Assembly: GCA_965235115.1 (NCBI GenBank)
Contig: OZ249448.1
Span: forward strand, 14,694,001-14,758,000
Length of the DNA stretch: 64,000 bases
Direction of reading: 5' to 3'
Origin: Laetmonice hystrix
Lineage: Eukaryota
Shown: positions 726 to 59,824 of the stretch, one piece after another
Numbering within the stretch: the stretch's first letter is position 1
How the letters are laid out: every line of letters starts with the position of its first letter
The notes under the pieces: generated by a model
Databases searched by the model: none
What the model was told of the DNA's origin: nothing
Seen by the model: only the letters and a program-made list of their open reading frames with translations
Made by a program: the position numbers and the translations under genes

Positions 726-2567
726 CTGTATTTATCAAGTAAACATGTCATCAGTATACCAATCTATGCTACGAGAAAGGGTTAGATCTAATGGCACGCG
801 GGGCGGTACCAGCGTTAGCAAAAACAGGGGGAGGTCAGGGATTGCTTAGTAAACTTCATTAAGATCTCAAAATATTCTAAAGATGCGAATTATATACTCA
901 ATGTTTTAGGGCCTCGTTCTGTTCTGGACCAAGAGGGTTGTGTGTTTTTGTTAGTGTTAATTCAGATGGAGGCGGGGGGGGGAGGGGTGAGAATATACCC
1001 TCGAGTGTGAATGATAGATTTGTGCACAGAGAACGTCGACATCTTTACCATCAATCTTGACTATGTTTCAAGTAATGCCCGCGCGGCCCCACACATTTAA
1101 GGCCAAAGGGGTCGATTGCTTGCGATGCGGACTGCCAGTTGAAAGTACCCTATATAATACAATGCTACAGCCTGAAATGGGACAACAGATCACCTAGACA
1201 TTCCCGCCATAACTAGGCCTACATCCCCTGCAATCTCACAGCACTCCCCCTCCCTTTGCAGATTACGATCTTTTAAACTTTATTTGGGGTTTTATTTACC
1301 TAGAGTCTATGACTTGTAAACCTTAGAAGTTCAGAATGCAACTGCTATAAGGAAAGCGCAACGGATGGCGTGCAACAGCTTTTTAAAGGCACGTGCCTGT
1401 CGTTATATCCATAATAACAGTCAGCAAGATATGGAAGATAGGCCTACACGCGGTTTGTTTGGTTCGTTGATTAGATTTTCTACACCTATAAGAGACACTC
1501 CGTGATCTCACGACAGACCCCGTGATCTCAGGACAACCCCGTGATCTCTCGAGAAACTACGTGACCCGGCGATACCCAACCACGAGAGTTGGTATAGGTG
1601 CACGTCGATGAATGATGCAGAATGAATGGTCGATTACGGAGTGCTTTCAGCCTGAATAATCCCCCTCGATTACGGCATGTGTGCCTTATAAACAATGGCG
1701 TAGATTTGTAGGGGATGGGACAGTGAAACATGACGTCATAAAGTATCGGGTAATCATCCCCCAGAATCTACAACAGCCTAACATAACAAGGGTTTAGTGT
1801 GGCGAATCTCCGTAAAGTGAATGGTATAGGCCTACTACTATAGTATACTAGGCCTGATCAGAACTGGGGATTCATGATCAAGTATAAGTTCGGCACCCCG
1901 ACCGGAATTGACCTTTCTGGCTCAGGAACAGTTGTGTCGGTCGAGGGGCCATCTCCAATCAACCAACTGCCTTCCCACATGCCGACTGACCCTAGACATT
2001 ACAACCAGGGTAGCCTAACCTATACCCACCACTGCCAGTAGCCAATTACTGCACTCAGGGCCAATCCAACCCCCACTTACACCTCGTTCCAATTCACCAA
2101 TGGGGTTTGGTGCAAAAGGTCATGTACAAAATCTTCCTGGTCAGGGGGTACATCCTGACGGCTGGGGGAGAGTTAAACATCCAGATGATCATTCTCCACG
2201 TTTGTATCTGTGTACATGTACGGGTTGGGTATGGATTGTTGGTCTGTTAGGGAAAATATTCTTATTGCAATAGGCCAACTATATAGGTCTTTAAGAAAAT
2301 GTATATTTAGAACTTTACGGAGATGAGAAATTAAATTTCGTACATAATTACCATAATTATGTGGCATCTAATGAGTGGTAATTTAAATAATTTGGACCGT
2401 TGTCGAACTTCTACCCTCAGTGGAGGTTTGATGCTTCTTGAAGAGTTTAAAGGGGGCCACAACCCTATGGACCTGTCGGTCCCGCCAGCGATGTTATTGG
2501 AATGTAGGTCCTATCTGACATGTGCTATAGTCGGCCGCAAATGAAACGCAATATTTATACCATGCAC

Positions 2568-3388
2568 ATCACCACCCAATGCCCAAGCCACCATTCTCAC
2601 CACCCAATGCCCAAGCCACCATCACCACCACAATGCCCAAGCCACCATCACCACCACAATGCCCAAGCCACCAGTCTCACCACCACAATGCCCAAGCCAC
2701 CATTCTCACCACCCAATGCCCAAGCCACCATTCTCACCACCCAATGCCCAAGCCACCATTCTCACCACCCAATGCCCAAGCCACCAGTCTCACCACCCAA
2801 TGCCCAAGCCACCAGTCTCACCACCACAATGCCCAAGCCACCATTCTCACCACACAATGCCCAAGCTACCATTCTCACCACCCAATGCCCAAGCCACCAT
2901 CACCACCACAATGCCCAAGCCACCATTCTCACCACACAATGCCCAAGCTACCATTCTCACCACCCAATGCCCAAGCCACCATTCTCACCACCCAATGCCC
3001 AAGCCACCATTCTCACCACACAATGCCCAAGCCACCAGTCTCACCACCCAATGCCCAAGCCACCATCACCACCACAATGCCCAAGCCACCATTCTCACCA
3101 CCCAATGCCCAAGCCACCAGTCTCACCACCCAATGCCCAAGCCACCAGTCTCACCACCCAATGCCCAAGCCACCATCACCACCCAATGCCCAAGCCACCA
3201 GTCTCACCACCCAATGCCCAAGCCACCATTCTCACCACCCAATGCCCAAGCCACCATCACCACCTAATGCCCAAGCCACCATCACCACCCAATGCCCAAG
3301 CCACCATCACCACCCAATGCCCAAGCCACCATCACCACCCAATGCCCAAGCCACCAGTCTCACCACCTAAAGCCCAAGCTACCATTCT
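2568..3388. repeat. Minisatellite, mixed 28/25-bp units (CCAATGCCCAAGCCACCATTCTCACCAC), about 30 copies
   Basis: Direct tandem reading; it generates the His/Pro-rich ORFs in all three + frames. Confidence 0.95.
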
Positions 3389-3398
3389 GTATATATGG

Positions 3399-3665
3399 AG
3401 GTGTTCTGGGTGGACCCCGGCGCGATTTTCTTTTCCAAACAGGTTTGCTATGACGCTTGGAGTCAAATTGTTCAAAAAGGGTTAGAGTTAGGGATAGCAT
3501 TGGTTATTAACTCTTAGGGATTTACGGTTAGTTAGGGATAAGGATAGTGATATTCCAACACAGTTTAGAGCAGCTAGGCTAACTGTCACGTGCGTCCTAT
3601 TCGGCATTTGATTGGACGAAATGGCAAACCTGTTTGGGGAAAAAATTTCGCACCCTGAGCAGCGT
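3399..3665. mobile_element. Small foldback/MITE-like element with internal GGTTAG/GGGATAG telomere-like motifs
   Basis: Imperfect inverted repeats 3421-3448 (GCGATTTTCTTTTCCAAACAGGTTTGC) and 3624-3651. Confidence 0.6.
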
Positions 3666-3867
3666 GACGACCTCTGACACGAGGACGCTGCCCTGACGAG
3701 CCCAGACTGCTGATGATATGAGTGGAAGCAGACGTTACAGTGATGGAAGCGCGACCTGGTGGTGCTGGCAAGAACTAGGCCAAGTAGCGGCTGAATAGAC
3801 ACTCCCAGCGGTGGTGCTTCCGCATGCAAAACGATTACATTCAGATCTTTAAAGATTGGCTCCATTA

Positions 3868-4308
3868 GGCTGAGTTCACATAGGAGTATACGGCACGGGT
3901 ATACGGTGCACGTTTTGCAGGGCACGCGAATAGCTTTAATCATACAATAGGATCTTATAATACCGGGTCACATCAGACGGCACTATTCGAAAAGGCGTAT
4001 AGTATAGTATAGTGGGAATCGTGCGTGTTCGATTTTAGTGCAGCGTATACCTTGGGGTGCCTGTGTTTATTCTTGATATTTTTTAACGAAATTTTCAGAT
4101 CTAAGGGCCGATATATAGGGGTATTGACTCTGAAAATTTCAAAGAAATCAGTTCAAGGGGAGGGGCAGGGGGCACCTTTCAATTCATGTCGGGAATTAAG
4201 ACACTGGCGGGCGTGACTCGCCGTGCCCGTATAGCGTATAGCGAATACCGAATAGCGAATACCGTATACCGTATACCGTATACCGTATACTCCTATGTGA
4301 ACTCAGCC
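3868..4308. mobile_element. MITE, probably PIF/Harbinger-type
   Basis: Perfect 26-bp TIR GGCTGAGTTCACATAGGAGTATACGG (28 bp with flanking TA). Flanks are TTA / TAA; subterminal (CCGTATA)n. Confidence 0.8.
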
Positions 4309-6802: not shown

Positions 6803-8588
6803 CTAGAGGATGATGGTGGCGCCTATAGCTCCACTATAGACCCCCGTCTGGTCGGTTAGCGTTCTCACTGATGGCCACAGAGGCCGTCAGGCACTGCAGG
6901 TTGCCACCATACAACAACAGTCACGGCAAAAATCCTGCAGCGCAATGCAAACGAAGATATCGAGGGCAAGTGTGTGGAGATGTCGGTCTATACCCTGCGC
7001 TCACCACCACGCTGGCTGCGTGCTCGCTGCGACTACTGCAGATCCAGCTCCTATTCTGGGTCGGGTTCCGCCGGTCGGCCGAGAGGGGTCACTGCCGGCA
7101 GGCGTGGCGTTGTGGGAGGTCACTCAGACGCTCACACTGGAGTCGGCGTCTGTCAAGTCGATGGGGGTGGCAGGGGAGGGGAGAAACAGCTGGTGGAGTC
7201 CTCTTGCACTGTTCTAAAGACGCCGAATGGTCATCAGGAAGTTGCCTGGCCTAAAATTTCCCACTCCTCATGAATGCATTTTCCTGCTGGCCACCTGAGT
7301 TCATTGGCGGCGGGCAGCGTTGGCTCTCACTGCTGTTGTCAGTGAGCGGACAACATTCAGCAGGCGTCGACTGGTTGGTTGGTCCAGAGGCGGCCAGTAA
7401 TGGTCCACAACACCGGTCGGTGATGGAGGGATGAAGACGGGCTTTGTTTCTGGTCAGCAATGGTTTGATGTGTGTGTGTATAGTGTGTGTGTGGGGGGGG
7501 GGGGGGGGGGGGCTTGATGTGGCCCGGTTCAGCACCTATCTAACCTGCTCATTGACCCGAGTTGCGGAATGTATACAGGCCTTGATCTATATAGGGTGTA
7601 TACTGATCATGATCCCAGCGGTGCCCGTATGTTTACTGAGTGAGACCGACTGAGGGCAAGTTGTCCGCAGTCTAATACAGTCTGTATAAAACCTGATAAC
7701 TCGGTGAAGAAGATTTTACTGGCAGGGGCTTTGGTTGGCAGCCGGGTGAGGGACCGGCGGCTATGGGCCAATACCCCCGGAGCACATCCGTCATCAGGGC
7801 TCTCCAGCCGTCGGACTTGGTTAGCCAGCGGCCTTGGCGGGCCGTAACATTAACAGCATAGAGTATAGACAGTCCGCCGGTCGGCTACCTCTGCCAAGTG
7901 ACCAAACTCTCTGTCCGTGCAGGGTGGACTCTCAAGGCCAGGGTGGAGTGGGGGATGGCCTCTCAAGGCCAGGGTGGGGTGGGGGCGGGGCGGGGCATGT
8001 TTATCCGTCACAACTTATGCCGGTACTTCTTTGCGAGTCGCTGCAAGGCACAGAGGGCCAACATGAAGGATGAGCAGGCGCACATATCGTCACTGGTGTT
8101 GGATGGCTGTTATTATGGGTGACTGATGGAAGGCTATTTCGTCCTGTCTTTCTCAAGAGTCAATATCTGCCTAGAATCAGACCTGTTGGAGCATAAAGCA
8201 GATAGGGACGGCTCCTACGCCAAAGGGGTGGGTATAGGCTGGAGTGTAGGGGGTGGGGGTGCATGGGGAAGGGTGACCCCGGGATAGATTGTAAGGGTAT
8301 AGATTACTCCTGCCCCCCCATGTGCACGATCTATATATTATATAGTATATTCTCCAAGCATGAATTTTTGCCGTCATGATATTAGAGGAAGATATTGGTC
8401 AGTATATAGCTTATAATAGAGTAACCATAATGTTCCAGACAAACACCTATATGGGTAGACGTCAATCTGTAGAACTAGTGTCCTGTCATAGTAACCCATC
8501 TTTCTGAACAACCTTCCATTAAAGCACCAATATAGGCGATTGAAAAAACACACACACAAAACAGGAGTAATTAAGAATATCTGTACAT

Positions 8589-8594
8589 TTTATT
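8589..8594 (-). terminator. Polyadenylation signal, likely 3' end of the RasGAP mRNA
   Basis: AATAAA on the minus strand followed about 25-45 nt downstream by a U/GU-rich tract (8545-8565). Confidence 0.5.
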
Positions 8595-11500
8595 CAAAAT
8601 AGACGCTTTTATCGAATCATGAAACATTCACTAGGATATATTTTTCAACAATAAACGTGAGCTCCAGCTGACAGTACAATGTCACTGATATATACGGTCT
8701 GTCTCTCGTACGTCAACCTCCGCACGTGACGTGCCACCAGCTCATGACTGCTTGGTCTAGACGCTACAGTAACCATGATATTAAAATATACATTCTTAAA
8801 TGCACTGGCGGCATTTTTGCAATGACAATAAGTAGGCTACTAAACGTGGCAGTTAAATTTCAGTACCTTTTAACTTGCACGATACCCGTTGAACCAACCG
8901 TCAACACACCGCAATGAACGCCTATACCAGTTGTGTTCATTTGCCTACGTCAACGCCAAAGGACGTACATGGGCGATAATGGGTACAAAACACAATATAA
9001 ATATCAAGTCAAAATTGTAAAATGTAAACCATGCATATCATCAATATATAGATATATGTATTTATATTTACTATCACGAGGGGGTTCCCGACAAAATGTG
9101 TATCTATGCGCCACCACTAGGCCTACTAGATATATCAACAAAAATAAGATCGACAGGGGTTGAAAGATTACATAGGCCTAATTAATATCATTTAAACCTA
9201 GACGCTCAATGAAGGAATTATGGGTTGCCTACTGGCCTGGGATGACAAGCAAAATCATTGCAACACCTATTCAAATCATAATTAGCTTAGCTTCACTGGC
9301 AAAACGGGGAGATCTGAAAGTAAATTAAAGAATATACACATTTACCAATAAAATAGAATAACAAATAGATGTTATTTATACGGGATTAGGCAAGGTAGCT
9401 TCAGTGTAGACTGCAACCCTTCCCTGCTCCCGATCAGGAACTACACTGTCGGCTACTACACAAATGTAACCAAATACAATGTCCAATACGATCTACGCTC
9501 CAACGGCTTAGGGTCACCTCCATCGATGACCTCAACAGTTTACCATTCAAAACAACTCACATAATTCACAGTGTGCGTATATAGGGCTAGACGGCCGAAA
9601 ATTGTATCTGTCACGGCCGCTTGGTCCTCGGAAATTTATATAGGCCTACCTATGTGATACTAGCATTATTTTGTCCACTCTCCACGACATGCACTGAGTG
9701 ACATGATTATAGGGGCTCCGTGAAAATGTTTATGTTGGGAATTGCAGGCGTGTGTCTCGACCATGAAGGTGTCAGACGTGTTACGTAACATTACTGGTGC
9801 ATGTTGGTGGGAGCACGTGCTGCGTACTTAGTACCAGACTTAACCACCAGGTGGCAGGTAAAGTGTTTACCTTCATGACTCGTAAACGTACATTTGTATA
9901 CGATAATCGTCAATTGGGTAATCAGCCAGGTATCGTTTTCAATGCGTAAAACACTCATGAAAGGTTCGCATCACCCTCGGCATGCCTTCAAAGTTAGAAC
10001 CAAGTCGTTACGGCCACAGATCAAAGGTTTAAATCCACTGTTACGACGTTTTCTGGTTATTGGTGAATGTCTGTGTTAATTTGGAGAAATTTCAACATTT
10101 CAACATCATGGCAAACATGCGTTACTCTGGACAACAGTCACCTTCACTGAATGTTCCTCAACCATCCACAAGTTTTAAGTAACATCTTTTGACTGAATAT
10201 TTTCACCTCTGGGATGGTGTAGACCGTAACCGCAGCAGGTCTATATGAGAATCTTAACTTAATTATACAACCCTTTGCTGGATTTTATCCAAAAACTTTG
10301 GAGAATATTTACGACCCGGCGCCATCTTTTTTCAAAAAGCAGTGTTCGCCGTGAAGATTCCCTCTTCTGGTAAAATGTATCTACAGAAATGCGCTGCGGA
10401 ATGTTAGAAAGAACTTTCAAAATGGTCGCCCTAAGCCGGACTATTATGTTTTGGACATCTCAAGGCATTTTGATCTATGCTCGGGTGTTCAGATATGTAT
10501 AAAGCCATAAACTTTGTGCTTCTGATCTAATGAAAATGTATAAGTTCGCTGAAGGCAAATCGGTAGCCTACTAGACTTGCTTAATGTTAGTAGGACCTCA
10601 CCCATACAAAATAACATAACGTTTACAAAACACATATTCTGTATGAGCGAGCAACAATGACGATATGGTAACAGCTCTGAGGACTGTTTGCTGACGGTCA
10701 ACGATACCAATAAATTAGCATATTTCTGCAAATATTCCATATAAAACAACATTATTAACTATGCAAACACACGTTCCTGACAATATGTATACAATGATTA
10801 TATCGACAACCTCATGTCACGGGATTCATCGGAAAAATAAATCACGTCAGTTGGGAATATGACGGCAAGTAGTAAAATACACAATATCAACATTAGAAAG
10901 GTTCAGAACATTCAACAGGGCCTGCATGGGTCACCTCTCGTGGTTTCTGTTACTGCTGTTAGGTGGCACACCATGCCGGGCAAACTTCTTTCAACTTCCA
11001 CAACGCCGAAATCCTTCTCCTCTGCTTCAATGTCGCAAGTACAAAACACGGGTGGTGTATGGGATCTTTTTAAGGTATACAAGAAATATGTGCTGTTGTC
11101 AGTTTTAGCCCTAAACACTGACAATGATAAATAACTATAGATTAATAACCAGATTTCAACAGTACGATCGAAATTCAACACGCGTTGCAAGGAATTTTAA
11201 TGACGTCATCTGGCAGCAACGCACCTCCATGACATTTCAGAAAGAAACAGCTGTTCGTAATGAAATACCTTACGAAATCTTCGTTATTCTTGACAATTTG
11301 ACTTTTATATTTGTTTGGTTACTGCACTCAGCCAGCAGTCTTGGAGACCTGGGTAGTTATCGGCGTTCTGCCCACGACTCTCGTACCACGTCTCCGAGAG
11401 GGTTGACAAGGTTATAGCGTGTGACATTATACAAACGACACCTATAAATACCACATCGTATCGCCTACTTTTTTAACCACTTCTTTTGGTGACCACCGTC

Positions 11501-13151
11501 TTTCTATCCCCAACTGCAAAATGTATGTTATATAAATCATTTAACCCAATAATTAAGCCTGAAGTGAACGCTTGTGATTTCTATCACACGTTTTGATTTT
11601 TTATCTTTTTTTAAATTAAGGGCTAACCGTCTTAGACAAAAATAAGTAGCAGATGGTTTAATTATCGAATGAATCTTTGTCCATGAAATTGTCCGAAACT
11701 ATTTGGCAAAAGTTTTCATCAAACTGCACCTTCCCCTGGTTTTTGTACGAGAGGTCAATCCTCGACATCCTCGACAGAAGCCTTGCGGATCGAGCTAGCC
11801 TCCCCCCCCCCTTCCACCCCGACAGGCACGCCTTCAACCATACTTCAAGGCCTGGTATAGTTGCTCCAGGTACACCGTCATCCTGTACTAAATGACCTCT
11901 GGAACCTGGCATCATGAGCAGCATATTGCAGAAACATAGCATATCACATTTTCTGACACTACAAGAAAGGGACATCCTTGTATGATTGTATTCCCCAATA
12001 TATAAAAGTTACGGATGATGACATACAATGTTGATATGTTCCTACATTTACATAATAAAGAGAAGACGAGGTACTAAACAATCTTCGCCAGTTATGCAAA
12101 AATATTTTAGTAAATTCTTAAAATATAATCTTTGAATGGAATATTCCATAAACAGATATTATATACAGAAACATTTTATCGTCAGAGATTCGTATAACAC
12201 CATCTCGCACCATGCCATCCTGCCATGAAGTCTTCTCTATTAGGATAAGAACGATTCCATTCTTTGAAAATGGAAAATCACTTCAACTCTGAAAAGAAAG
12301 GCAGTAAGTACCATGAGCAACCGCTTTCCCCTCTGTTCGTCTGGCCCGCTGGGGCGGGTTGCATGCCCTCTGGTGTCAAAGGGAAGAACTAGCCGTGTAA
12401 GACGAGCCCGGCACAACTGTCCAAAATGAAGAGTCCATGTCCTCGCAAAGCCTCAACCGACCTAATAATAGGGACGCACCTCCCAACAATCCAAGGATAA
12501 ATAGTCACGAACGATGACAAAATAACTGGATGAACATCCGGAAATGTTTTACACCTCGAAACCCTGACCCTTATAGAAAAGGTACATCCTAGCCGATTTC
12601 ACTTTTTCCAGGGCCAAGCTTGCGAACATTAGACAAAAATCGGCTCACTTTTATAGTACGTCGAACAGCCACCAGAGGGCAGTATATGGTTTTGTGTTAT
12701 CCTCACCTGTCATTGGTTGACAGAATTAATTAATTCCCAGGGCAGATTGCGGGAGATGTAGACAGGTTGTCGCATGGCGACGCCAAGTTTGTGATCTAAA
12801 AATATGCTTACTCCGAGTATAATTAAAATTCACCCGAAAAAGTCAGTTCGAGTTTGAACCTCCGTCGGCCTACCGTGGCAAATGCCACCCTCTTGAAGGA
12901 GATACCGACAGAATGGGAAAAATGAGGGCGGGCAAAGAAGGCCTCTATGCCAGATAACAGCAGAAGGCAAAATGAGACCACACAATTTCAAGGACGACTT
13001 AAGCCAAGCATCTGAGGCATCTTGGGTCTAATGCCGCTGTTTCCATGGCGACAGCAACGTCTCCACGCCTCTAAACAATGAGTGACTGCCCCCCGGTGAG
13101 TATAAAGCAGGTTTCACTGTTTCCGGTCCCAAAGAACGCACAATTCTCTGG

Positions 13152-13500
13152 TTAATCAACCTTTCCCCGACATATACTCCCACGTGCCCGCTCCTTCTCC
13201 ATTTTTTCATAAGCCTCGTGAGCCTTCTCCAGGTCCCTGATGACATCAAGGAGTTGCGCGACGGAGGCCATCTGTGCGTCCTGGAAGGAGGTGCTCCTGT
13301 GTAAGGCGTGGTGCGAGTCTGTGGCTATCATGAGGAACATGGGTGAAGGGGGCGGTGGTTCCAGGGTTGTAATTGTGGACTGGGTCTGGCGAAGATGGGC
13401 CTCCTGGGCGGATCGCTCCTGCCGGTGCTGCTCCTTCAGCGTCTGCACCGTCTCCTTGACAACCTCCTCCACAGCTTCCTGGCTCTCAAGGTACTTTTGT
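13152..13500 (-). CDS. RASAL1: RasGAP exon 20, presumed terminal (QKYLE...[16 protein letters not shown]...GKVD*)
   Basis: TTTTTTTCAG| acceptor; C-terminal DLEKAH motif. Stop at 13152 is assumed; a further short exon cannot be excluded. Confidence 0.8.
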
Positions 13501-16500
13501 CTGAAAAAAATGATAATATTTTCCAAATGTGATTCTTTAAGGTACTGATAACATTGCCCACAATAATGGTTCCTATTTAACACATTATAAGGGTAGAAGA
13601 TGTTGATAATATTCTGGTGTTGTTTTACCGGCAGAGAAAAACAAAAACGGATTGGCTTTTCTCCTATCGGACAGTGTAGAGCAACACTAAATATAAAACC
13701 TTACCGGTGACATCGGGCTAACAGACGTCTTTTCACTGCGTGTGCAGTAAAAGAAGATTGATTTGGTGCGCACTCTAACTTGGCGCCATTTTCTGATAGG
13801 AGCACGTCACCTGACCGTGCCATGATTCCCCGCAAATATGCGCAACGTCACTTTATTGTGTACACCAGCATATTGAAAACACGCGCACGTGCGCTTCTTC
13901 CCATCCCTGCTTGCCACGGTCAGAACATGCCGCGGACAAAAAAAATCTACTCGACCAAGTATGCCAAGTCTAATGGGGCTTGTTCCGAAAGGTTGACGGA
14001 AAATGACGATTTACATACGTCCTTTGTTTATCGATCAATTTCAACGAAAGACTACATCACTAAAACAGCAACAGAAGTTGTTTTTGTTACTTTCTACCAA
14101 AATGCCTCTTTAACTTGATGATAACGTGTATTCTGGCCCTGAGTATGGTCTATAGATACCGACAGGTGTGAACCAATGTGTCCACCCTCCACCTGAGACC
14201 GAGGTCTGTGTTACCTCAGGATGTCCCTGCCCTGGTAGAGTTGGGAGTAAATGGTCTGAGCCTCGGCGTCAGGATCCAACGGGTCTCTCCAGTCCCCAAT
14301 TGTTACGCGCGAGTGCGTCTGACTACATCCCAGAGCTGCAGAATATACACATGATCCTATATTCGATTTTACATTCACACATATTTGTTAATGTCAACAT
14401 ATTATACCTTCCAGTAAGATTAGTCAAAATGTCATACTGTCAACAGGTTTAAAAGCAAATCCTTTCTCTTTCATGTGAAACAAAGTTCCAAAACCTTTGC
14501 TTGGAAGTGGAAATGGTAATTACCAAAAACAAGTCGGCCTTCCGTTACAACTTCACGGTAAATTAACAACAGACAAAAGTAAAATAATTTCAGACCGTTA
14601 ACTGGGGTAAACGTTTCCTTACCATCCTTGCCGGGTCTGGAGCAGCAGGTCCACCTGTCCTTGCTGTAGTTAGCCGGGTGGTACGATTCTAACAGTTCCT
14701 CGTTTAACATGATTGTCTTCCTGATCGATGAGATCCAAGAATACATGTCATTGATGTCCTAAAAATATCAACAAACCGTCCCATATCGTCAGGTTAGTGG
14801 TATATGTACAAACATTATCAGTTATCAGGGGTGAGGATTCTAACATATCGTCAGGTTAGTGGTATATGTACAAACATATCGCCAGGTTAGTGGTATATGT
14901 ACAAACATATCGTCAGGTTAGTGGTATACAAACATAGGATTATAACATGTCGCCAGATGATCGGTATATATACAAACACAATCAGTTATCAGAGGATTCT
15001 AACATATCGTCAGGTTAGTGGTATAATTATGTACAAACATAGGATTCTAACATATCGTCAAATTAGTGGTTTATGTACAAACATATCGCCAGGTTAGTGG
15101 TACATGTACAAACATAGGATTCCAACATATCGCCAAGTTAGTGGTATATGTACAAACATATCGTCAGGTTACTGGTATATGTACAAACATAGGATTCTAA
15201 CATATCGCCAGGTTAGTGGTATATGTACAAACATATCGCCAGGTTAGTGGTACATGTACAAACATAGGATTCCAACATATCGCCAGGTTAGTGGTATATG
15301 TACAAACATATCGTCAGGTTACTGGTATATGTACAAACATAGGATTCTAACATATCGTCAGGTTAGTGGTATATGTACAAACATATCGCCAGGTTAGTGG
15401 TATATGTACAAACATATCGCCAGGTTAGTGGTATATGTACAAACATAGGATTCCAACATATCGTCAGGTTAGTGGTATAGATATACCTTCTCCAGATGTA
15501 TGTCAGAAAGTACATTAGCTGGTTTTTTCTCCATAAAGAAGAAGTGTACAGTATTGATGAGCGAGCCTCCTTACCTTAGCTTGGAAGTAGAGTACCTCAG
15601 GATGACCTTGTGAGTTATATATGATGACCTGGCCCATGTTGGGTCGTGAGAACGCGTGCTTCTCCACACGCTCAACCGCCCGGATGCTGGCGATCGGTAT
15701 ATTATTTCTGACCTATGAACGGTATTCAGTTTATATATTGATAATTTAAGGTTGTAGTTTGAATATTCAGTTTTGTAATGAAACCATACAATCATTTTGT
15801 CAAGGTCACAACGTGTTTACAACATGTTTTATCCTTTTATGTAGAGCTAAAGGGATTTGTGGAGCTAATTTACGGGAGTTAATAATTGCAGGAGTTCTCA
15901 TTGATATTAAGATACCTGATCATTGGGTTTCTTGGCATAGGCTAAGGTGTCGTATTTGAGCCAGAAGTATCTCTTCTGAAATGTGAATGACGTCATCATT
16001 TTGACGTAGTCCCATCGGCGTTTCCAAAGGTAGCCCTGTTTGATGGTGACCGAGGGATGGAACACGCTTCTCCTTCGTGAGTTCTCAACAGGAGCTGGGG
16101 ACAGAAAAATATCTTCCGTCTGAGGCAACATTTTTTATCAGTTAGTTTTCGTAAAAAATATGAGGTGGTTGTTGCCTTTAGCGGTTTTAATTAGTTGACT
16201 ACAACCCCCCCCCCCCCCCCCCACCCACCCACACACACTAGTTTCATATAACCTCAGTTTAGATCCACTTTTGATTTCTTTCCAATACCTCACCGAACCC
16301 AAGTTACGCACCCACATCACCCAGAGAAATCTTACCTGTGTTTTCGTCAATGTTGACAAGTTCGTCGATAAAGTTCTTGATATCGGTGACGCTCTCCTTG
16401 ATGAAAGGGGTCAAAGGTTCCATCCACTGTTCCTTACCCACCTGGAGGCCCAGATTCCCCATGTTCTGCACTGTCTGAAAAAACCAACCAATCACTGTCA

Positions 16501-40800: not shown

Positions 40801-43800
40801 CTATAAGAGAGCGGGGTTTTGTCCGTGGCAGAGGAGAGATATTCCTTCTATATTTTTGTAGACCTAAATCTGGAATCAACCAGTCAAACTAGGCCTAATG
40901 CTCCATTCGCCTTGACTGATTGGAGGATGTTACTTAGTTACCTCCATTTTCCCCCGATATAGCCTAACACAAGCCTGTAAAAATGTCATGTAGGCCTATA
41001 GGCCTATACCCTGGGAACGACGACAATCATATAGCTCAGGGTAGTTCGAATATAATGAGAGGAATCCATCATTTTCACCGCTCTCCTCACGATGGCAGGT
41101 GTGCAGATTGGGTACGCTTACAAAAGTGTGGACCATGGCCTTAACTCGCGATAATGGCATCTATAGCCTAGGCCTACAACACTTGAAAACGTAGCTCCTT
41201 GCCGACCGCACACATGACTATGTCGTCTTTGTCAAAGAAAATCCCCAGCTGCCTGTACTTCAGGGTGAGATCTATAGTCGCCTTCGTCCGTAGACACGTG
41301 GTTTAGCATAATACGTCTCCGGCCGGCCGACACAAGCCGTTCGAGAACTATAGGTAGGCTACAATGATGTCAGACTATGAGGATTAATATAATTTGCGTC
41401 CGCATTGTTAGGAACAGCGGTGTCAAAATATGAGAAGTAAGTATGTCTCTAAGGCGGTGTTTTTTCTAGAGAGGGCTGTCTCTCAGGGTTCCATTTAGGC
41501 CTATTGTAATACAAAAACCTATTAACTGGCATTATCGTGGAAATATTGCTTAGTGACAGTATTCCCTCTCATACAACGCAGTGGTCAGAGCGCGGGATCT
41601 TTGATCCAAAGGTTCTAGGTCAGAAGGTCAGCCAGTTATGCGAACCGCAAGTTGTCCCTTCACCTGTGTGCTGTAAGACTGGAGTGGTTGGTCTTCATTC
41701 CCAGGTGTGTTGTAAGACTGGAGTGGTTGGTCTTCATCCCCAGGCCCTGGTTTTTAGTTTGCAAACCGAGTCTTAAGATTCAAATCTTAAGATTGAACTA
41801 TTGTTTCAGAGCTTCTGATTGGTCCTTCAAATGAAGTCAGCCAATGAGGAACCATAACACAATTCAGTCTAACATTTCCAGTCTTAAGTAAAATGACGAA
41901 CTAAAAACCGGGGACTGGTGTGTTGTAAGACTGGAGTGGCTGGTCTTCCTCCCCGGGGGTGATATCAGACTGGAGTGGTGGTCTACATCCCCAGGTGTGA
42001 TGTCAGACTGGAGTGGTGGTCTCCTTCCCCCAGGTCGGTGTGATGTCAGACTGGAGTGGTGGTCTCCACCCCCCAGGTGTGATATCAGACTGGAGTGGTG
42101 GTCTCCATCCCCCAGGTGTGATATCAGACTGGGGTGGTGGTCTCCATCCCCCAGGTCGGTGTGAGGTCAGACTGGAGTGTTGGTCTCCATCCCCCAGGTG
42201 TGATATCAGACTGGAGTGGTGGTCTTCATCCCCCAGGTGTGAATCAGACTGGAGTGGCGGTCTCCATCCCCCAGGTGTGAATCAGACTGGAGTGGTGGTC
42301 TCCATCCCCCAGGTCAGTGTGAATCAGACTGGGGTGGTGGTCTCCATCCCCCAGGTGTGATGTCAGACTGGAGTGGTGGTCTCCATCCCCCAGGTGTGAA
42401 TCAGACTGGAGTGGTGGTCTCCATCCCCCAGGTGTGAATCAGACTGGAGTGGTGGTCTCCATCCCCCAGGTCAGTGTGAATCAGACTGGGGTGGTGGTCT
42501 CCATCCCCCAGGTGTGATGTCAGACTGGAGTGGCGGTCTCCATCCCCCAGGTGTGATATCAGACTGGAGTGGTGGTCTCCATCCCCCAGGTGTGAATCAG
42601 ACTGGAGTGGCGGTCTCCATCCCCCAGGTGTGATATCAGACTGGAGTGGCGGTCTCCATCCCCCAGGTCAGTGTGAATCAGACTGGGGTGGTGGTCTCCA
42701 TCCCCCAGGTGTAAATCAGACTGGAGTGGTGGTCTCCATCCCCCAGGTGTGATGTCAGACTGGAGTGGTGGTCTCCATCCCCCAGGTCAGTGTGAATCAG
42801 ACTGGAGTGGTGGTCTCCATCCCCCAGGTGTGATGTCAGACTGGAGTGGTGGTCTCCATCCCCCAGGTCAGTGTGAATCAGACTGGAGTGGTGGTCTCCA
42901 TCCCCCAGGTCAGTGTGAATCAGACTGGAGTGGTGGTCTCCATCCCCCAGGTCAGTGTGAATCAGACTGGGGTGGTGGTCTCCATCCCCCAGCTGTGAAT
43001 CAGACTGGAGTGGCGGTCTCCATCCCCCAGGTGTGATGTCAGACTGGAGTGGTGGTCTCCTTCCCCCGGGAGTGATGTCAGACTGCAGTGGGAGGGCCCG
43101 GGGTGGCGCAGTCCCCCTATGAAATATGGACCCCTTCGAGTTTTTTTCATTTAATGGACAATGATCAACCAAACACGGGAAAGCATTATTGGGGTTGAGA
43201 TGACAATAAGCGAGGCGTTGATTGCGACACGTGCCTCATGTTTGTTCAGCAGCTACCGCCATTGTCATGTCATTTACATACAAGTCATTGTATATAAAAT
43301 AGAGGTAAAACGGAGGGGGGGTCCATACTCTATGGGTGGATTCCATATTTCACTATAAACCGGGGTCCATATATTATGGGGGTCCATTTTGCATCTCACA
43401 TCGGCCGCGTCACGATACGTCTATGTGAAGGGACACGTTAAAGATCTATTGGCATCTATCGAAAAGAGTAGGGGGTCGCCCCAGTGCGCGGGTTTCTTCC
43501 TATCATTATCACCCAATGCATTTCACCGACTGAGTTAGTTACCTTGTTCTCGCCCTGATATAGCTGAAATACTGCTGACTGGGCGTTAAACATCAACTAC
43601 TCATTCACTGTGACACTCATTCACTTTATGGTGGCCGAGTGGGCATGTGTATTGATACCTTATGCTATAATATGCGAATGGCTGCAGTCATCTTGGGGCC
43701 GGGGTTCAATTCCAGTAGAGGACTATACAACTTTTCTCTTCACATTCTGAAAGTAACTGGGTTTAATTACGCCTGACGCCCGTGCATCTAAAATCAATTA

Positions 43801-54265: not shown

Positions 54266-56850
54266 ATGTCTGAAATGGCAGGTTTTCGCAACAATGAAGG
54301 GCGCATATACGTGGGAAACTTGCCACCCGATATCCGCACGAAGGATATCGAGGACCTGTTCTATAAATTTGGTAAAATAACATTCATCGACCTGAAGAAC
54401 AGAAGAGGGCCACCATTTGCATTTGTCGAATTTGAGGACCCACGGTGGGTACAGTTTCAATAATTATTTATGAGTTAAAACGTTGAAACACACTTTAAAA
54501 TCTATACGGAGAGTTGAACTATTAGTTGTATGAACACTATAAGTGTATAACAAGCATGGCAGCAGGAGAGTTTCACAAATGAAGCCATTGTTTTCTAAAG
54601 CGCATTGTCGCTGTGTGAAATTCTGCGAAATGAGGTCAAGTTGAAGCACACGACGTTTGCCGAACAGGCATGCAGCGGGAGAAAGTGCGCATGCGTGGGC
54701 CTGTGGTGGCGTGGGCTGGAGGCAGTGGTGGCGTCGGGTGGAGGCCCACCACCTCGACCTTTGTCTTTGATTTGGCGTTTTACATCCGTCTTCCTCTTAC
54801 TTTTAAACTAAACTTTGTCTTCTAAAGTAGTCTTTAGAACTCTAAGAGTAAGAAGTCAGTCCCTCCAGTCCAGGGTTTTCAGTTCACTCACAAAAATAAT
54901 TGGTCCAAGTGTCACAGTTGTGAGTTATAAGGGGGTCATTTGTTGGGTCAGTTGTCGGTAAAATTTTGCCTTATATAGTTATACTAAAAAAAAGGTCAAA
55001 GATATGAGCCAAAGGGTTCCTAAATTAAAAACCAAATTACTTGACAAATGATCAAAAAGTGAAAAAAATACATTTTTAAATGGCGATAAAACCCATGTTT
55101 TCAACCATGCTACAGCCTTTCCCATAATCCGAGAAACTCTGACTCTTTGTTTCACTCAGAGTCACAGCGCGAACAGTGCAAACTCCCATAGAAGCAAATC
55201 TACATGCCCCTCATGCAAAGAAAACCCAGTGTCATATTCCCAAACCCTGAGTTTACCTTCACTTCACCTCTAGCCTAAGAAGCATTATAAAAACGTGTCG
55301 CGGTTGAAATAACATGTTACTTTTACCAAAATAGTTGATGATATTTTTTTAGCGGCAAAGCCCCAACTACCAAACCGCCACTATTGCTTTCATGCAAAAA
55401 ATGACTGCTAGGCAGACCTAGGAGAGAAAACCAATCGCAGTCTACTGTGACAGGTGCTCATTAACCCTCACTTCCGATCATTTCTACATACATGGATGGT
55501 ACTGGTAGATCAGCGACAGTAGCATTAGAGCACAATCTAATTAAAAGCGCATGCGAAATAACTGAAATCTAATTTTAATGAGATTGCATAAGAGCATTCA
55601 ATTGCCAAAGTGCCAGTCCGCTTACATTGCGCTGGTGCATATTTTGAGTTGACTACACCTGCCTGTACCATTTCACTATATCTATAAAGATGTTTCAAGG
55701 GCTAGGGGACCCATCGAAACACCATAACATCCTGACAAGGTGGTGGCAACACACGAGCGTCTGACGAATTTTGATCAATTTGGCTTCATTTATCTGTCAT
55801 TAAACGATAAAATAAACATCATTTTCGGGATTTAAAAGGTGGTTGTCCGCCTGTACGCTCAGATATTTGTTTTTGGTTGTCTGCACGGCTGACATAGGCG
55901 GCCCGGACACGATTTTGACAGGCCATGAAGGGGGCAGAGAAAATTTGCCAGGTAATCTTAGCTACAGAGACATTTTAAGGTTTTTTGTGATTTGTGATTT
56001 GTGTTTCTAAAGGAAAAAAAGACTGCATGAGGATGGCTTGTTATTGTTTTCAGTGATGCAGAAGATGCCGTGCATGCCCGCGATGGTTACAACTATGACG
56101 GTTACCATTTGAGGGTTGAGTTCCCACGGGGTACAGGACCAGGTGGCAGACGTGGTAGGGGGCGTGGAGGACCTCCATCTCGTCGATCTGAATACAGAGT
56201 ACTCGTTTCAGGTGAGAATTATACATATCTCCTGTTCTCTCTGACATCTTTAAGCTTGAAGCTTAAAGCAGTGACTTTTAAAGGCAGCTTCTAAAAGAAA
56301 TGGAAGAGTTGCAAGTGCAGTAAGTTGAGTAACAGGGTGTCTGACTGAATTGAAAGAATTTGGTTAGAATTGTGAGTGGACATTATGTTGATGCAGGTCT
56401 CCCAGCCACAGGCAGTTGGCAGGACTTGAAGGACCACATGCGGGAGGCAGGAGATGTATGCTATGCTGATGTCTACAAAGATGGAACTGGAGTAGTTGAG
56501 TTCCTGCGCTACGAGGACATGAAGTACGCCGCACGGAAGTTGGACGACTCCAAATTCAGATCCCATGAGGTAACGCAAGTGTTTCATTGAAAAAAACTAT
56601 GAAATATTTTGAGTCTGAATTTCTTAATGTGAAAATTCCTGCAGGTTTTATAGCGAAAGTTTGGTTTATTTTGAGGTAGTGCATAAGTTCCATTGTGCTT
56701 CAGGGTGAAGTCGCCTACATCCGCGTCAAGGAGGACTACCGTGGACGTGGTTCGCGATCTCGCAGTCACAGCTTCTCACCGCCACGGCGAACACGAGGCT
56801 CGCCAAGTTACTCGCCGATGCGACGGTCGAGATCACGCTCGCCCTACTGA
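54266..56850 (+). CDS. SRSF1: Serine/arginine-rich splicing factor SRSF1/9 (SF2/ASF), 4 exons: 54266-54444, 56054-56211, 56397-56569, 56704-56850; 218 aa
   Basis: RRM1 ([35 protein letters not shown]), Gly linker, RRM2 with SWQDLKD, short RS tail; GT-AG introns of phase 2, 1, 0. Confidence 0.96.
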
Positions 56851-58240
56851 ACACCTAGTCGCTTATTGCACATAAAATGGACATGTATGGTGTAACATGC
56901 TCATGTTGCATGGACAGTATCCAGTATTCTGTTGCTGGAGTTTTTTAACAGCTACTCTAGTGGTGCAGAGAGAGAGAGGAGAGCCCAAAAAAAGAAAAGA
57001 ATACCAGTAGATCAATCATTGGCATGCTGAGCATTTGCAGCCTAGGCAAACATGCATTTCAACTGTATGTTGAAAGAAGAGCAGACTTTACTTTTTTTTT
57101 TAATTTGCCTGGCACACTTATTTGGTAGAAGACCATCCTGAAAACATGAAATCATTTTTAATCTGATCTTAGAAGAATCTAGGCAGTAAGTTATGAAGTG
57201 TGCATTTTTCTTACAAGCTTTTAATGGCGTAAACAGTTACAGGTGACTGCAGTAAGTGGAGTAAGTTGGCAAGTTGTAATGATGTGGTGTATAATTGTAG
57301 CAGTTTAATTCAGGTCTGTGGGAGATGTCTGTTCTTCGTACTTGCTGTCAAGTCTTTGTAGTGTTGTGTCCAGTCTTTTCTAACATGTTTTATTGCATTA
57401 TTATTTCCTGTAGATACTGAGGTTGGAAAGATCATTGGAATAAGTGAACTGTGCGAACACTGGTACTCCAAAGCATTGGACATAGGAATAAAGATTGGCA
57501 TAAAGGAGGGCACAGTGCATGGCTCTTATGTGGCGACACACTGACCATGTCTGCTGGCTTGATCAGGCCTCCCGTCATGGAATCACACCTTAACCATGGT
57601 ACGATTCAAGTTCTTGCAACACCAACATTTCTAAAGGCACATACATGTGCTGACAGTGGATGTATCAAACTGTGTTGGCAATTGCAGAATTAGCCGTACG
57701 TGAAAAGTTCTTGGCATTGACTTTCTTTTCCACAAACCAAATTACAAAACGACAACCTCTGGTTACAGACGTTTTATATTTTTTTAAATGCGACAACTTG
57801 AGAAAAGGCTGTTGGGTTACACAAAGTTTTCACGTGTCATAACCTGTAATAATCAAGTGTCCATTGGGAGGCTTTCAGGATGGTGACATATATCCTTGGC
57901 ACAGTTTTACCTCTGAATGGGAATGGTAGTTCAGATTTTTCCCTAAACGTTCTTTACTTCACTGCTGTTAAGAATTAAATGAATTTTACATCCTATTTCA
58001 GAGACATTTTCATTTAAATATTGTGGTTGAATTTGCCGAATCCAAATTCACTATTTTTCAGAAATAAAAGAGGTCTTGATACAATGGTCATTAAATTGAA
58101 ATTAAATTAAATTGAAACTTTTCTCTAACTAATGGAAATAAGGGTCTGTACCTGACAGCTGTTCTGGCCTTTCCCACCATGATGCATAAAGCCATTTTAA
58201 TAATGTATCTAATGCTGTTTTGTTTTCCACTTCTCTGAAG

Positions 58241-59242
58241 GTATTTGGGCTCAGATCAATCATTTGGAGGAATGCATAGGATGGGAGACAGAATACTCCG
58301 TGTAGGAAAACGGAAAAACCTCTTGGTGTACCTTAGGAGCCGCACGTATTGCTTAGGAGGGCATATTGTCCATAGGAGCCCTAGGAAATCCTGAGGGAAT
58401 GGAAGTGGGATAATCCTGGAAAGTGGCCCGCCGGAGTGGTCTGGTCTGTAGGGGACCCACAGGGATAAGGATTCCATAGAAAAAAAAAGCAGTTCCGTCG
58501 CGTTAGGGATATTGGATCATTGGAGTGCTGACTAGGATTTGTGTCAGTCGTTGCATGACAAGGAGGATTGTGTTCAAACGTGAATCTGTAGGAGCCTCAA
58601 ACAGGAGCCACATGTGGTCCTTTACAAACTGGAGTCTTGGGAGGAGCAAAGGTTGCACATCATCTACCTCAGTCTTTGGAAATTTTCCCACAAGAGGCCA
58701 CACAAATCTGAAACATGGGATAAATAGCTCAATTTCATCCCCTTTGGGAATGGTACAGAACGAAAATACAATTTCAAATCTTGATCCAAAAGAATTTTTT
58801 TTCCTTTTGACTTTTGAGAATTTGTAGCTTTATCTTGAAACTTCACCTTGTGCTTTCTATGTATGAATGATTGAAGGGGACACCTGGTATGAAGGCGTGG
58901 AAGCCTGATGCAGGTGTCTGTCTGCAGGAACGAGGTAGCATGTTGGGTGACGGGGTGTTTTGGGTGGAGGACATTTGTGTTAGTCCTGGATGGAAGTAAA
59001 CTAAGGAATCTGTAGGATCATTTGGATACATGTACTTTGGAACTTCTGGCCATTTTGGATCACAGGGATCAAACTGGAAAGGAAACAGCCTTCAGGTAGG
59101 AGGAACAAACCTGTCAGGATCATGTAGTTGGAAATCTAATTCATGTGACAAGACACCCCAGTCAAAGCAACAATTCAGGCATCCTTAAGGAACCAGGCTT
59201 CAGGACTTGCACTTCAGTGAGGATTGAGGATGACTTGAATGG
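58241..59242 (+). promoter_or_regulatory. GGA-rich putative alternatively spliced 3'UTR segment of SRSF1
   Basis: About 55 GGA in about 1 kb (manual count); preceded by CTAAT, a polypyrimidine tract and AG at 58240. Confidence 0.55.
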
Positions 59243-59732
59243 GTAAACCTCTTATTTTCCTTTCAATTCCTCTGTCTCCCATGTCTGTTTTAATAGGTTT
59301 ACTGTTGTCATTAAATGGCAACAACATAGAACATGTATTTTATCTGTTCACCAATGATGTGTGCATGCCAACACAGATCAAATTACTACCAAATTAATTT
59401 TTATTGGTTTGACTTTGACCCCTAATGCACGTCAATGGGTGGTTCCTGGGACCAGAAACCGTACAATTATTTTTTTTTCTTGCATTATCGTGCATACCCT
59501 TTGTTTCTTTGTACGTTCCTCCTCTGAATCCACATTTAAAAAAAAATTTCTTTACTCTGCTCGTGTGTCATTAATGCACGAAGGCAGCCGCCAGAGTGAT
59601 GCTGGGCAGTCGATGTGGGAAGTTTGTTTCAGGTCCACAGATGGGGACCCCCGATGCACTGCCATCCGGTGATGCGCAACAGCTGCTGTGAAGATCTCCT
59701 TTATTGTATGTCCTTTGGTGTTAAATAACTTC

Positions 59733-59738
59733 AATAAA
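59733..59738 (+). terminator. SRSF1 polyadenylation signal
   Basis: AATAAA followed by GTTTGTTGTTTGTGG at 59761. Confidence 0.65.
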
Positions 59739-59824
59739 GATTCTTAAATGTAAACAAAAAGTTTGTTGTTTGTGGAACCAGTGTGGGATTACTCGCAAAA
59801 AGGAAATACATACTCGAAGAGAAA

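Follow-up and report, generated by a model that had tools for sequence, protein, structure and literature searches.

The window analysed here is a stretch of 64,000 nucleotides (nt) from Laetmonice hystrix (GenBank assembly GCA_965235115.1, contig OZ249448.1, positions 14,694,001 to 14,758,000 of the forward strand), and positions below count from its first letter unless another locus is named. It holds a four-exon gene on the + strand (54266-56850) for a serine/arginine-rich (SR) protein of 218 aa, followed by a 3' untranslated region (3'UTR) whose intron and GGA-rich downstream exon are the subject of this analysis (Table 1). The protein has an N-terminal canonical RRM (RIYVGNLP), a pseudo-RRM with an SWQDLKD helix and a short C-terminal RS tail ending in SRSRSPY; its stop codon, TGA, lies at 56848-56850. 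Comparison of exon 3 with SRSF1 RRM2 structures in the PDB gave an E value of 4.7e-30 (about 5e-30). Entries named SRSF1 scored 103-105 bits, and the next match, named hypothetical protein only, scored 101 bits. In the 627-Mb genome, the SWQDLKD helix is found in one SRSF1/9-type gene and one SRSF4/5/6-type gene and in no others. Since the genome has a single gene of that type, it is best named SRSF1/9-type and cannot be assigned to SRSF1 rather than SRSF9. An earlier reading of the letters alone (the original prediction) had called it SRSF1, which gives the correct family, but the choice of SRSF1 over SRSF9 does not hold in a genome with just one such gene.

RNA evidence was taken from contigs of runs X1-X4, compared with 56570-59800. 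X1-X3 are DNA runs of the same sample. X4 is the single RNA run for this genome and represents cDNA, because in one of its contigs exon 3 is spliced directly to exon 4, at 56702/56704. Within the 3'UTR, another X4 contig joins 57597 to 58240 ("skips 642, GT..AG (cut +1)"), which defines an intron at 57599-58240 with the junction 57598/58241 (in motifs and junctions a slash marks the splice boundary). As X1-X3 contain the continuous form only, the 642-nt gap reflects splicing and not a deletion. A further X4 contig (57572-58269) keeps the intron. Both retained and spliced forms thus occur in RNA, a co-occurrence that rests on contigs and, for this genome, on one run. The junction lies 748 nt downstream of the stop, wholly within the 3'UTR and beyond the 50-55 nt limit. 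In X4 RNA the sequence after the acceptor forms one continuous downstream exon, carried by a contig that runs unbroken from 58240 to 59720 across both GGA blocks, 58753 and 59243-59296. On the 5' side, contig 56702-57601 is likewise unbroken and passes through the donor-like cluster at 57186-57261. Contig assembly drops rare forms, so other splice sites may be in minor use, and k-mer depth is not quantitative.

Table 1. Features of the SRSF1/9-type gene and its 3'UTR in the window.
Feature	Position	Strand	Details
SRSF1/9-type coding exons	54266-54444, 56054-56211, 56397-56569, 56704-56850	+	Spliced translation
Last coding exon segment (RS domain)	56704-56850	+	Spliced translation; joined to exon 3 at 56702/56704 in an RNA contig
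Donor-like cluster	57186-57266	+	GTAAGT at 57186, 57252, 57261; CAG/GTGACT with GT at 57243; in sequence, no RNA joint there
Second acceptor-like element	57376-57413	+	TTCTAAC, pyrimidine tract, AG 57412-57413; strongly conserved in L020
GGA-enriched UTR segment, possible mini-exon	57414-57598	+	6 GGA in 185 nt, 32 per kb; ends at used donor
3'UTR intron, spliced or retained	57599-58240	+	642 nt, GT..AG; donor CATG/GTACGA (C at +4, suboptimal); 7.8 GGA per kb; RNA run X4
Acceptor island	58202-58258	+	Branch-like TCTAAT, TGTTTTGTTTTCC tract, AG 58239-58240, first bases of downstream exon; at least 75% identity with L020; used in RNA
GGA array, block 1	58241-58752	+	32 GGA
GGA-free T-rich gap between blocks	58753-58869	+	Opens with donor-like ATG/GTACAG; unspliced in RNA contigs; site not kept in L020
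GGA array, block 2	58870-59242	+	23 GGA
Conserved element at end of array	59210-59296	+	GAGGATTGAGGATGACTTG, donor-like TGG/GTAAAC (GT at 59243), 54-nt intron-like stretch, pyrimidine tract, AG 59295-59296; RNA contig retains all
Distal 3'UTR	59297-59760	+	GGA-poor; poly(A) signal AATAAA 59733-59738; RNA contig reaches 59720

The exon behind this acceptor is dominated by a single triplet. Between 58241 and 59242 there are 55 GGA against 13 TCC, which makes the array strand-specific, and no other 1002-nt stretch of the 64-kb window holds as many GGA (mean 13.7, standard deviation 6.3). In 2000 simulations under a first-order Markov model built on the array region, GGA numbered 30.5 +/- 5 with a maximum of 46, below the observed 55. 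The same holds for the genomic background, sampled as 150 kb from 13 other chromosomes with both strands counted (mean 12.8 per 1002 nt, maximum 42). Of its top windows that we inspected, those with 42 and 39 TCC are tandem repeats, and the window with 42 GGA is not obviously one. The edges of the array are sharp: GGA density is 7.8 per kb in the intron (57599-58240), 54.8 per kb in the array (58241-59243) and 5.7 per kb in the tail (59244-59765), with the high density beginning 25 nt past the acceptor. Within the array, GGAs are irregularly spaced, stand in varied contexts and show no tandem structure, and the array is single-copy within the genome; together these rule out a tandem repeat, a dispersed repeat or a transposon as its origin. 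Searching the stretch against Rfam returned no family at E values up to 1. The commonest 5-mers over both blocks are TAGGA, AGGAG, TTGGA, AGGAT and TGGAA, and CATAGGAT, close to the start of the downstream exon in block 1, also occurs in three distant loci (L018, L025 and L023, described below). A general purine-rich enhancer of the GAR or Tra2 type was considered and rejected. GGA is enriched 4-7x and GAA just 1.4-2.3x, while AGA is depleted, so the array does not reflect general purine richness.

The original prediction had described the region as a self-regulating splicing switch, and it is partly supported: the acceptor, the array and the kind of switch were right. Its motifs all lie where it had placed them (donors at 57186-57261, TCTAAT with pyrimidine tract and AG at 58239-58240, GAATGG(G)TA with GT at 58753 and 59243, AG at 59295-59296), and the acceptor at 58240 turned out to be the exact 3' end of a real alternatively spliced 3'UTR intron in X4, with the GGA array directly following. 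About 55 GGA had been counted in 58241-59242, which is the exact number, and the proposed division into two blocks agrees with 32 GGA in 58241-58752, 23 in 58870-59242 and none in 58753-58869. A GGA density above that of other UTRs of the genome had also been expected, and the count exceeds every window in 150 kb of other chromosomes (55 against a maximum of 42). The prediction had further foreseen a UTR junction in RNA, lying more than 50 nt past the stop, and transcripts extending past 58241: one junction was found (57598/58241, at 748 nt), and an RNA contig reaches 59720. The donors, by contrast, were wrong. The RNA uses CATG/GTACGA at 57599 and not the GTAAGT cluster, and pairing of donors 57186-57261 with acceptor 58240 is rejected on the available RNA, where the joint begins at 57599 and contig 56702-57601 has no break. 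A cassette spliced at 58753 and 59243-59296 is unsupported as well, none being seen in the X4 contigs, of which 58240-59720 is continuous through both. The 59243 donor-like site is conserved, and we keep the idea that minor isoforms may use it, with the array as an internal exon.

To compare this arrangement with other genomes, relatives were located by searching 1.84 billion proteins with the exon-3 peptide and following genomic open reading frame (ORF) fragments to their contigs. Four loci were informative: L020, a close relative whose exon 4 is 92% identical; the more distant pair L018 and L025; and the distant L023, which has two gene copies. The window, L020, L018, L025 and copy 2 of L023 have the same layout of stop, UTR, G/GTAYG donor, GGA-poor intron, acceptor and GGA array. 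The stretch of ordinary UTR before the donor is given as 330-600 nt for this layout, and the donor of the window lies 748 nt past the stop. Donor sequences are CATG/GTACGA in the window, AATG/GTACGA in L018, AATG/GTACGC in L025, ATTG/GTACGT in L023 and AAGG/GTATGC in L020. The introns span 430-1600 nt with 4-10 GGA per kb, the acceptors take the form TCTAAY...TGTTTTGTTTTC...AG, and the arrays hold 51-77 GGA per kb over 0.4-2.4 kb. GGA is the most enriched triplet in each of the five genomes (4.1-7.1x), and AGA is depleted in three (0.3-0.6x). TAGGA is the top 5-mer in the window and in L020; in L018, L025 and the lineage of L057, a locus of the wider survey below, the context is GGATT or TGGAT.

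The UTRs of the distant loci do not align with that of the window, yet this layout recurs in them. The original prediction had proposed an orthologous comparison, and in these loci the array is again found behind an acceptor. Even against L020, three islands of similarity are left: 57376-57509 (77% identity with L020 11710-11843, the best-conserved part of the proximal UTR), and 58202-58258 and 59210-59246 (at least 75% each). Identity within the array is about 42%, and 17 of the 55 GGAs co-align where 2.7 are expected by shifting, the aligner being biased toward such a result. Of the two donor-like sites, 59243 is kept in L020 and 58753 is not. In these alignments unusual conservation is present at the alternative junctions, though not as ultraconserved sequence. 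About one third of the array in L018 and three fifths in L025 consist of tandem duplications of GGA-bearing units (19 nt and 57 nt), and growth has been by recent tandem duplication; the remainder still has about 50 GGA per kb, and non-tandem array density is about 50-55 GGA per kb in four loci. The 19-nt unit, CTGGCTGGATTCATTCGTA, is present in 4.5 copies in L018 (8098-8183) and in about 24 in L025 (16629-17080).

Two of these loci have further peculiarities. L023 carries two head-to-head SRSF1/9 copies, at 2320-4236 (-) and 7257-11230 (+), with near-identical last exons, and within the sequence at hand only the minus-strand copy has the donor, intron and GGA array on its 3' side. Intron 3 of the SRSF1/9 gene in L025 has been lengthened to about 5 kb by the uptake, at 10519-14807, of a LINE-type retroelement ORF (endonuclease and reverse transcriptase, 921 aa) and, on the opposite strand, a 472-aa GDSL-lipase-like ORF.

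The survey was widened to 80 further exon-3 loci on JGI metagenome and metatranscriptome contigs, many of them spliced cDNA in which exon 3 leads straight into GE.YIRVKED. Strand-specific GGA clusters lie 3' of the stop in at least 14 of these loci, at 41-96 GGA per kb over 0.2-1.2 kb, and in most loci with an array the cluster starts about 5-30 nt past an acceptor. It directly follows a branch/pyrimidine/AG acceptor in L044, L034, L031, L072, L040 and L033. Because that acceptor is still present in the cDNA contigs of the first five, these represent the intron-retaining form. At its end, the array of L034 has a donor-like AAGG/GTAACG with a strong acceptor about 190 nt further on, matching the 59243/59296 layout of the window. 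A contig pair from a second, unrelated organism also records both RNA forms. L051 and the contigs L057 and L049 share one sequence as far as ...AAAATGGG and part 72 nt past the stop, where L051 (ATGGG/GTGAAG) continues with GTGAAG as a retained 5' splice site and L057 and L049 run directly into a GGA array. In the sequences surveyed, the array is a common but not universal feature of SRSF1/9 loci.

One surveyed cDNA is unusual at its stop codon. In L043 (metatranscriptome, ~480-500), a perfect GTAAGT overlaps the stop (TCG TAA GTC), and some 740 nt further on there is an acceptor with an array behind it; use of this GTAAGT as a donor would remove the stop.

We propose that this SRSF1/9-type 3'UTR combines a regulated retained intron (57599-58240) with a 1-kb homotypic GGA array downstream of it, and that the two provide negative feedback on the level of SRSF1/9; we assign this model a probability of about 0.6. 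The array is a cluster of the protein's own motif just 3' of the regulated acceptor, provided that GGA is its motif by analogy with the human protein, in which RRM2 (a pseudo-RRM with the SWQDLKD helix) binds GGA and more GGAs raise the affinity (PMC7813835). The conserved weakness of the donor, the scarcity of GGA in the intron and the start of the array only tens of nucleotides past the acceptor point to an exonic enhancer array that controls intron removal. We infer the binder, the response to its dose and what becomes of the spliced mRNA, in the following sequence of events. SRSF1/9, possibly with another pseudo-RRM SR protein, would load onto the array in proportion to its concentration, and the bound protein would enhance splicing from within the exon by promoting the pairing of acceptor 58240 with the weak G/GTACGA donor. 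Intron removal would place a junction 748 nt past the stop and render the mRNA unproductive through nonsense-mediated decay (NMD) and/or poor export or translation. The intron-retaining mRNA would be the productive one, and the net effect would be negative feedback on the SRSF1/9 level.

This scheme fits the logic described for human SR genes. The 3'UTR intron of human SRSF1 is kept in productive mRNA and spliced in an NMD-sensitive form (PMC2953442), splicing of that 3'UTR increases when SRSF1 is overexpressed (PMC9262138), and autoregulation by alternative splicing coupled to NMD through this intron is credited to Lareau 2007 as cited in PMC4529898. SC35 (SRSF2) promotes removal of the terminal retained intron in its own transcript through last-exon enhancers specific to itself (PMC2831310). 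The background on which the original prediction drew, that SWQDLKD binds GGA and that human SRSF1 has an NMD loop through a 3'UTR intron, is found in the literature (PMC7813835, PMC2953442, PMC9262138).

Several points weigh against the model. At face value, the k-mer depths of the spliced (93.5) and retained (126) forms are of the same order, although non-quantitative, and the spliced form is then not rare, although rarity might be expected of a strong NMD target. The model presupposes that NMD in this lineage depends on the exon junction complex. A preference of SRSF1 RRM1 for cytosine at -4/+6 has been reported and is only weakly visible here, as a weak excess at -4 to -6 around the GGAs of the window and of L020. 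About two thirds of the surveyed loci with at least 1.5 kb of downstream sequence show no clear array in the sequence at hand, and copy 1 of L023 has no array within 9 kb. Finally, the binder need not be SRSF1/9, because the SRSF4/5/6-type gene also has SWQDLKD.

That last point leads to an alternative in which the same intron is controlled but the array is read by other factors, either the SRSF4/5/6-type protein in cross-regulation or repressing UAGG binders of the hnRNP A/B type, so that the locus would be a regulated input and not a self-sensor. The second SR gene with the same helix speaks for it, as do TAGGA as the top 5-mer in the window and L020 and the 12 occurrences of TAGG where 3.6 are expected. 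In human genes, antagonists (hnRNP H and TDP-43) also bind the SC35 terminal-exon enhancer (PMC2831310), and the SRSF1 3'UTR intron is controlled by Sam68 (PMC2953442). However, the GGA core is the sole element common to all species, with GGATT or TGGAT and not UAGG as its context in L018, L025 and the L057 lineage. Across many lineages, moreover, it is SRSF1/9 genes in particular that carry the array, which makes self-recognition the simplest account, and we regard control by other factors as unlikely.

An even less probable reading has the array acting mainly in the cytoplasm or on mature mRNA, in translation, stability, export or localisation, through SRSF1/9 or another binder, with the intron incidental. 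Most cDNA contigs carry the array in mRNA that still holds the intron, and hence in the presumably translated form. For human SRSF1, work by Sun and colleagues in 2010 reportedly included translation among the layers of autoregulation and found a need for RRM2 and the 3'UTR. A review of the human gene likewise describes post-transcriptional autoregulation beyond splicing (PMC4529898). A purely cytoplasmic element would nevertheless not need coupling to an acceptor, and in most loci only about 5-30 nt separate the array from one, while the intron before it is consistently GGA-depleted and has a conserved suboptimal donor; the two roles are in any case mutually compatible. Very improbable, finally, is a reading in which an ordinary unregulated UTR intron happens to adjoin a neutral quirk of base composition or the decayed remains of a repeat or transposon. 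The tandem units of 19 nt and 57 nt in parts of the L018 and L025 arrays show that slippage contributes to growth. This reading is contradicted by the comparative data: arrays recur 3' of SRSF1/9 in many species with unalignable UTRs and have a similar non-tandem density of about 50 per kb, and the array of the window is strand-specific and single-copy, with no tandem structure here or in L020.

With the self-sensing switch as the preferred model, the locus can be set beside the known systems, of which SRSF1/SRSF2-type 3'UTR autoregulation is the class it adds to. Like human SRSF1 (SF2/ASF), a member of the orthologous family, it has its stop in the last coding exon, a 3'UTR intron that is retained (productive in human) or spliced, a junction far beyond 55 nt and conserved islands on the splice junctions. 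Whereas human has an SRSF1/SRSF9 pair, this invertebrate genome has a single SRSF1/9 gene. Layout and motif density are conserved here in place of ultraconserved sequence, and the cis-element is an explicit GGA array of 0.2-2.4 kb. NMD and self-regulation are known for the human gene and are proposed for this one. SRSF2 (SC35) shares the retained 3'UTR intron, possible competition by antagonists and enhancers for the encoded SR protein in the exon just past the regulated 3' splice site, which are putative here. It differs in the SR protein and motif, and its enhancers are a few sites in a conserved stem-loop, not a long array with a 3-nt core. The ancient poison exon of SRSF5-type genes (PMC4379411) resembles the present case in being an SR gene with unproductive splicing (presumed here) and an old splice architecture conserved across phyla. 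That exon, however, is a stop-containing cassette in the coding region, whereas the switch proposed here is confined to the 3'UTR and leaves the coding sequence as it is.

That mammals keep SR-protein levels in balance by unproductive splicing is well established; their cis-elements are embedded in ultraconserved sequence, and the extreme constraint on it has yet to be explained. In the present locus the same kind of switch would be directly readable in three parts: a conserved donor of low strength, a retained intron with few GGAs and a long array of a 3-nt pseudo-RRM motif. Since density is kept and sequence is not across many invertebrate-type genomes, it offers a simple, mutable model for how an SR protein counts itself, how its set-point might be tuned by GGA number and tandem expansion, and how old the SRSF1 3'UTR loop is. 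More tentatively, and with less confidence than in the switch itself, we suggest that the array is an ancient SRSF1/9 concentration sensor predating the vertebrate SRSF1/SRSF9 split. Selection would then act on the number and density of motifs (~50-90 GGA per kb) and not on sequence, so that the array could turn over freely and tandem duplication, of the kind seen in L018 and L025, could retune it, and vertebrates would later have frozen the switch into ultraconserved sequence.

Other elements of the 3'UTR may add to its regulation. The segment 57414-57598 has a counterpart in L020 (11746-11917) with 58 GGA per kb. Together with the acceptor at 57413, these GGA-rich 185 nt may delimit a second UTR intron with its donors at 57186-57261; no splice joining these donors to 57413 was seen in the X4 RNA contigs. 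Within the retained intron there is an AATAAA at 58063 and an ATTAA tandem of 4.6 copies (58090-58113) rich in UAAA/UUAA. An AATAAA also lies about 100 nt upstream of the acceptors of L018 and L025, and for this reason intronic polyadenylation may compete with splicing of the retained intron. STAR/Sam68-like UAAA/UUAA motifs number 18 in the 642 nt, which is raised here and not in the introns of the relatives, and control of retention by a STAR protein (Sam68-like) is possible.

Two minor observations concern other parts of the window. Contigs of DNA run X3 break at the T-run near 57092-57102 (within 57073-57102) with a loose unrelated end, probably a haplotype or assembly difference. The highest TCC density of the 64 kb, 50 per 1002 nt, is found at 42022-43023 (+).

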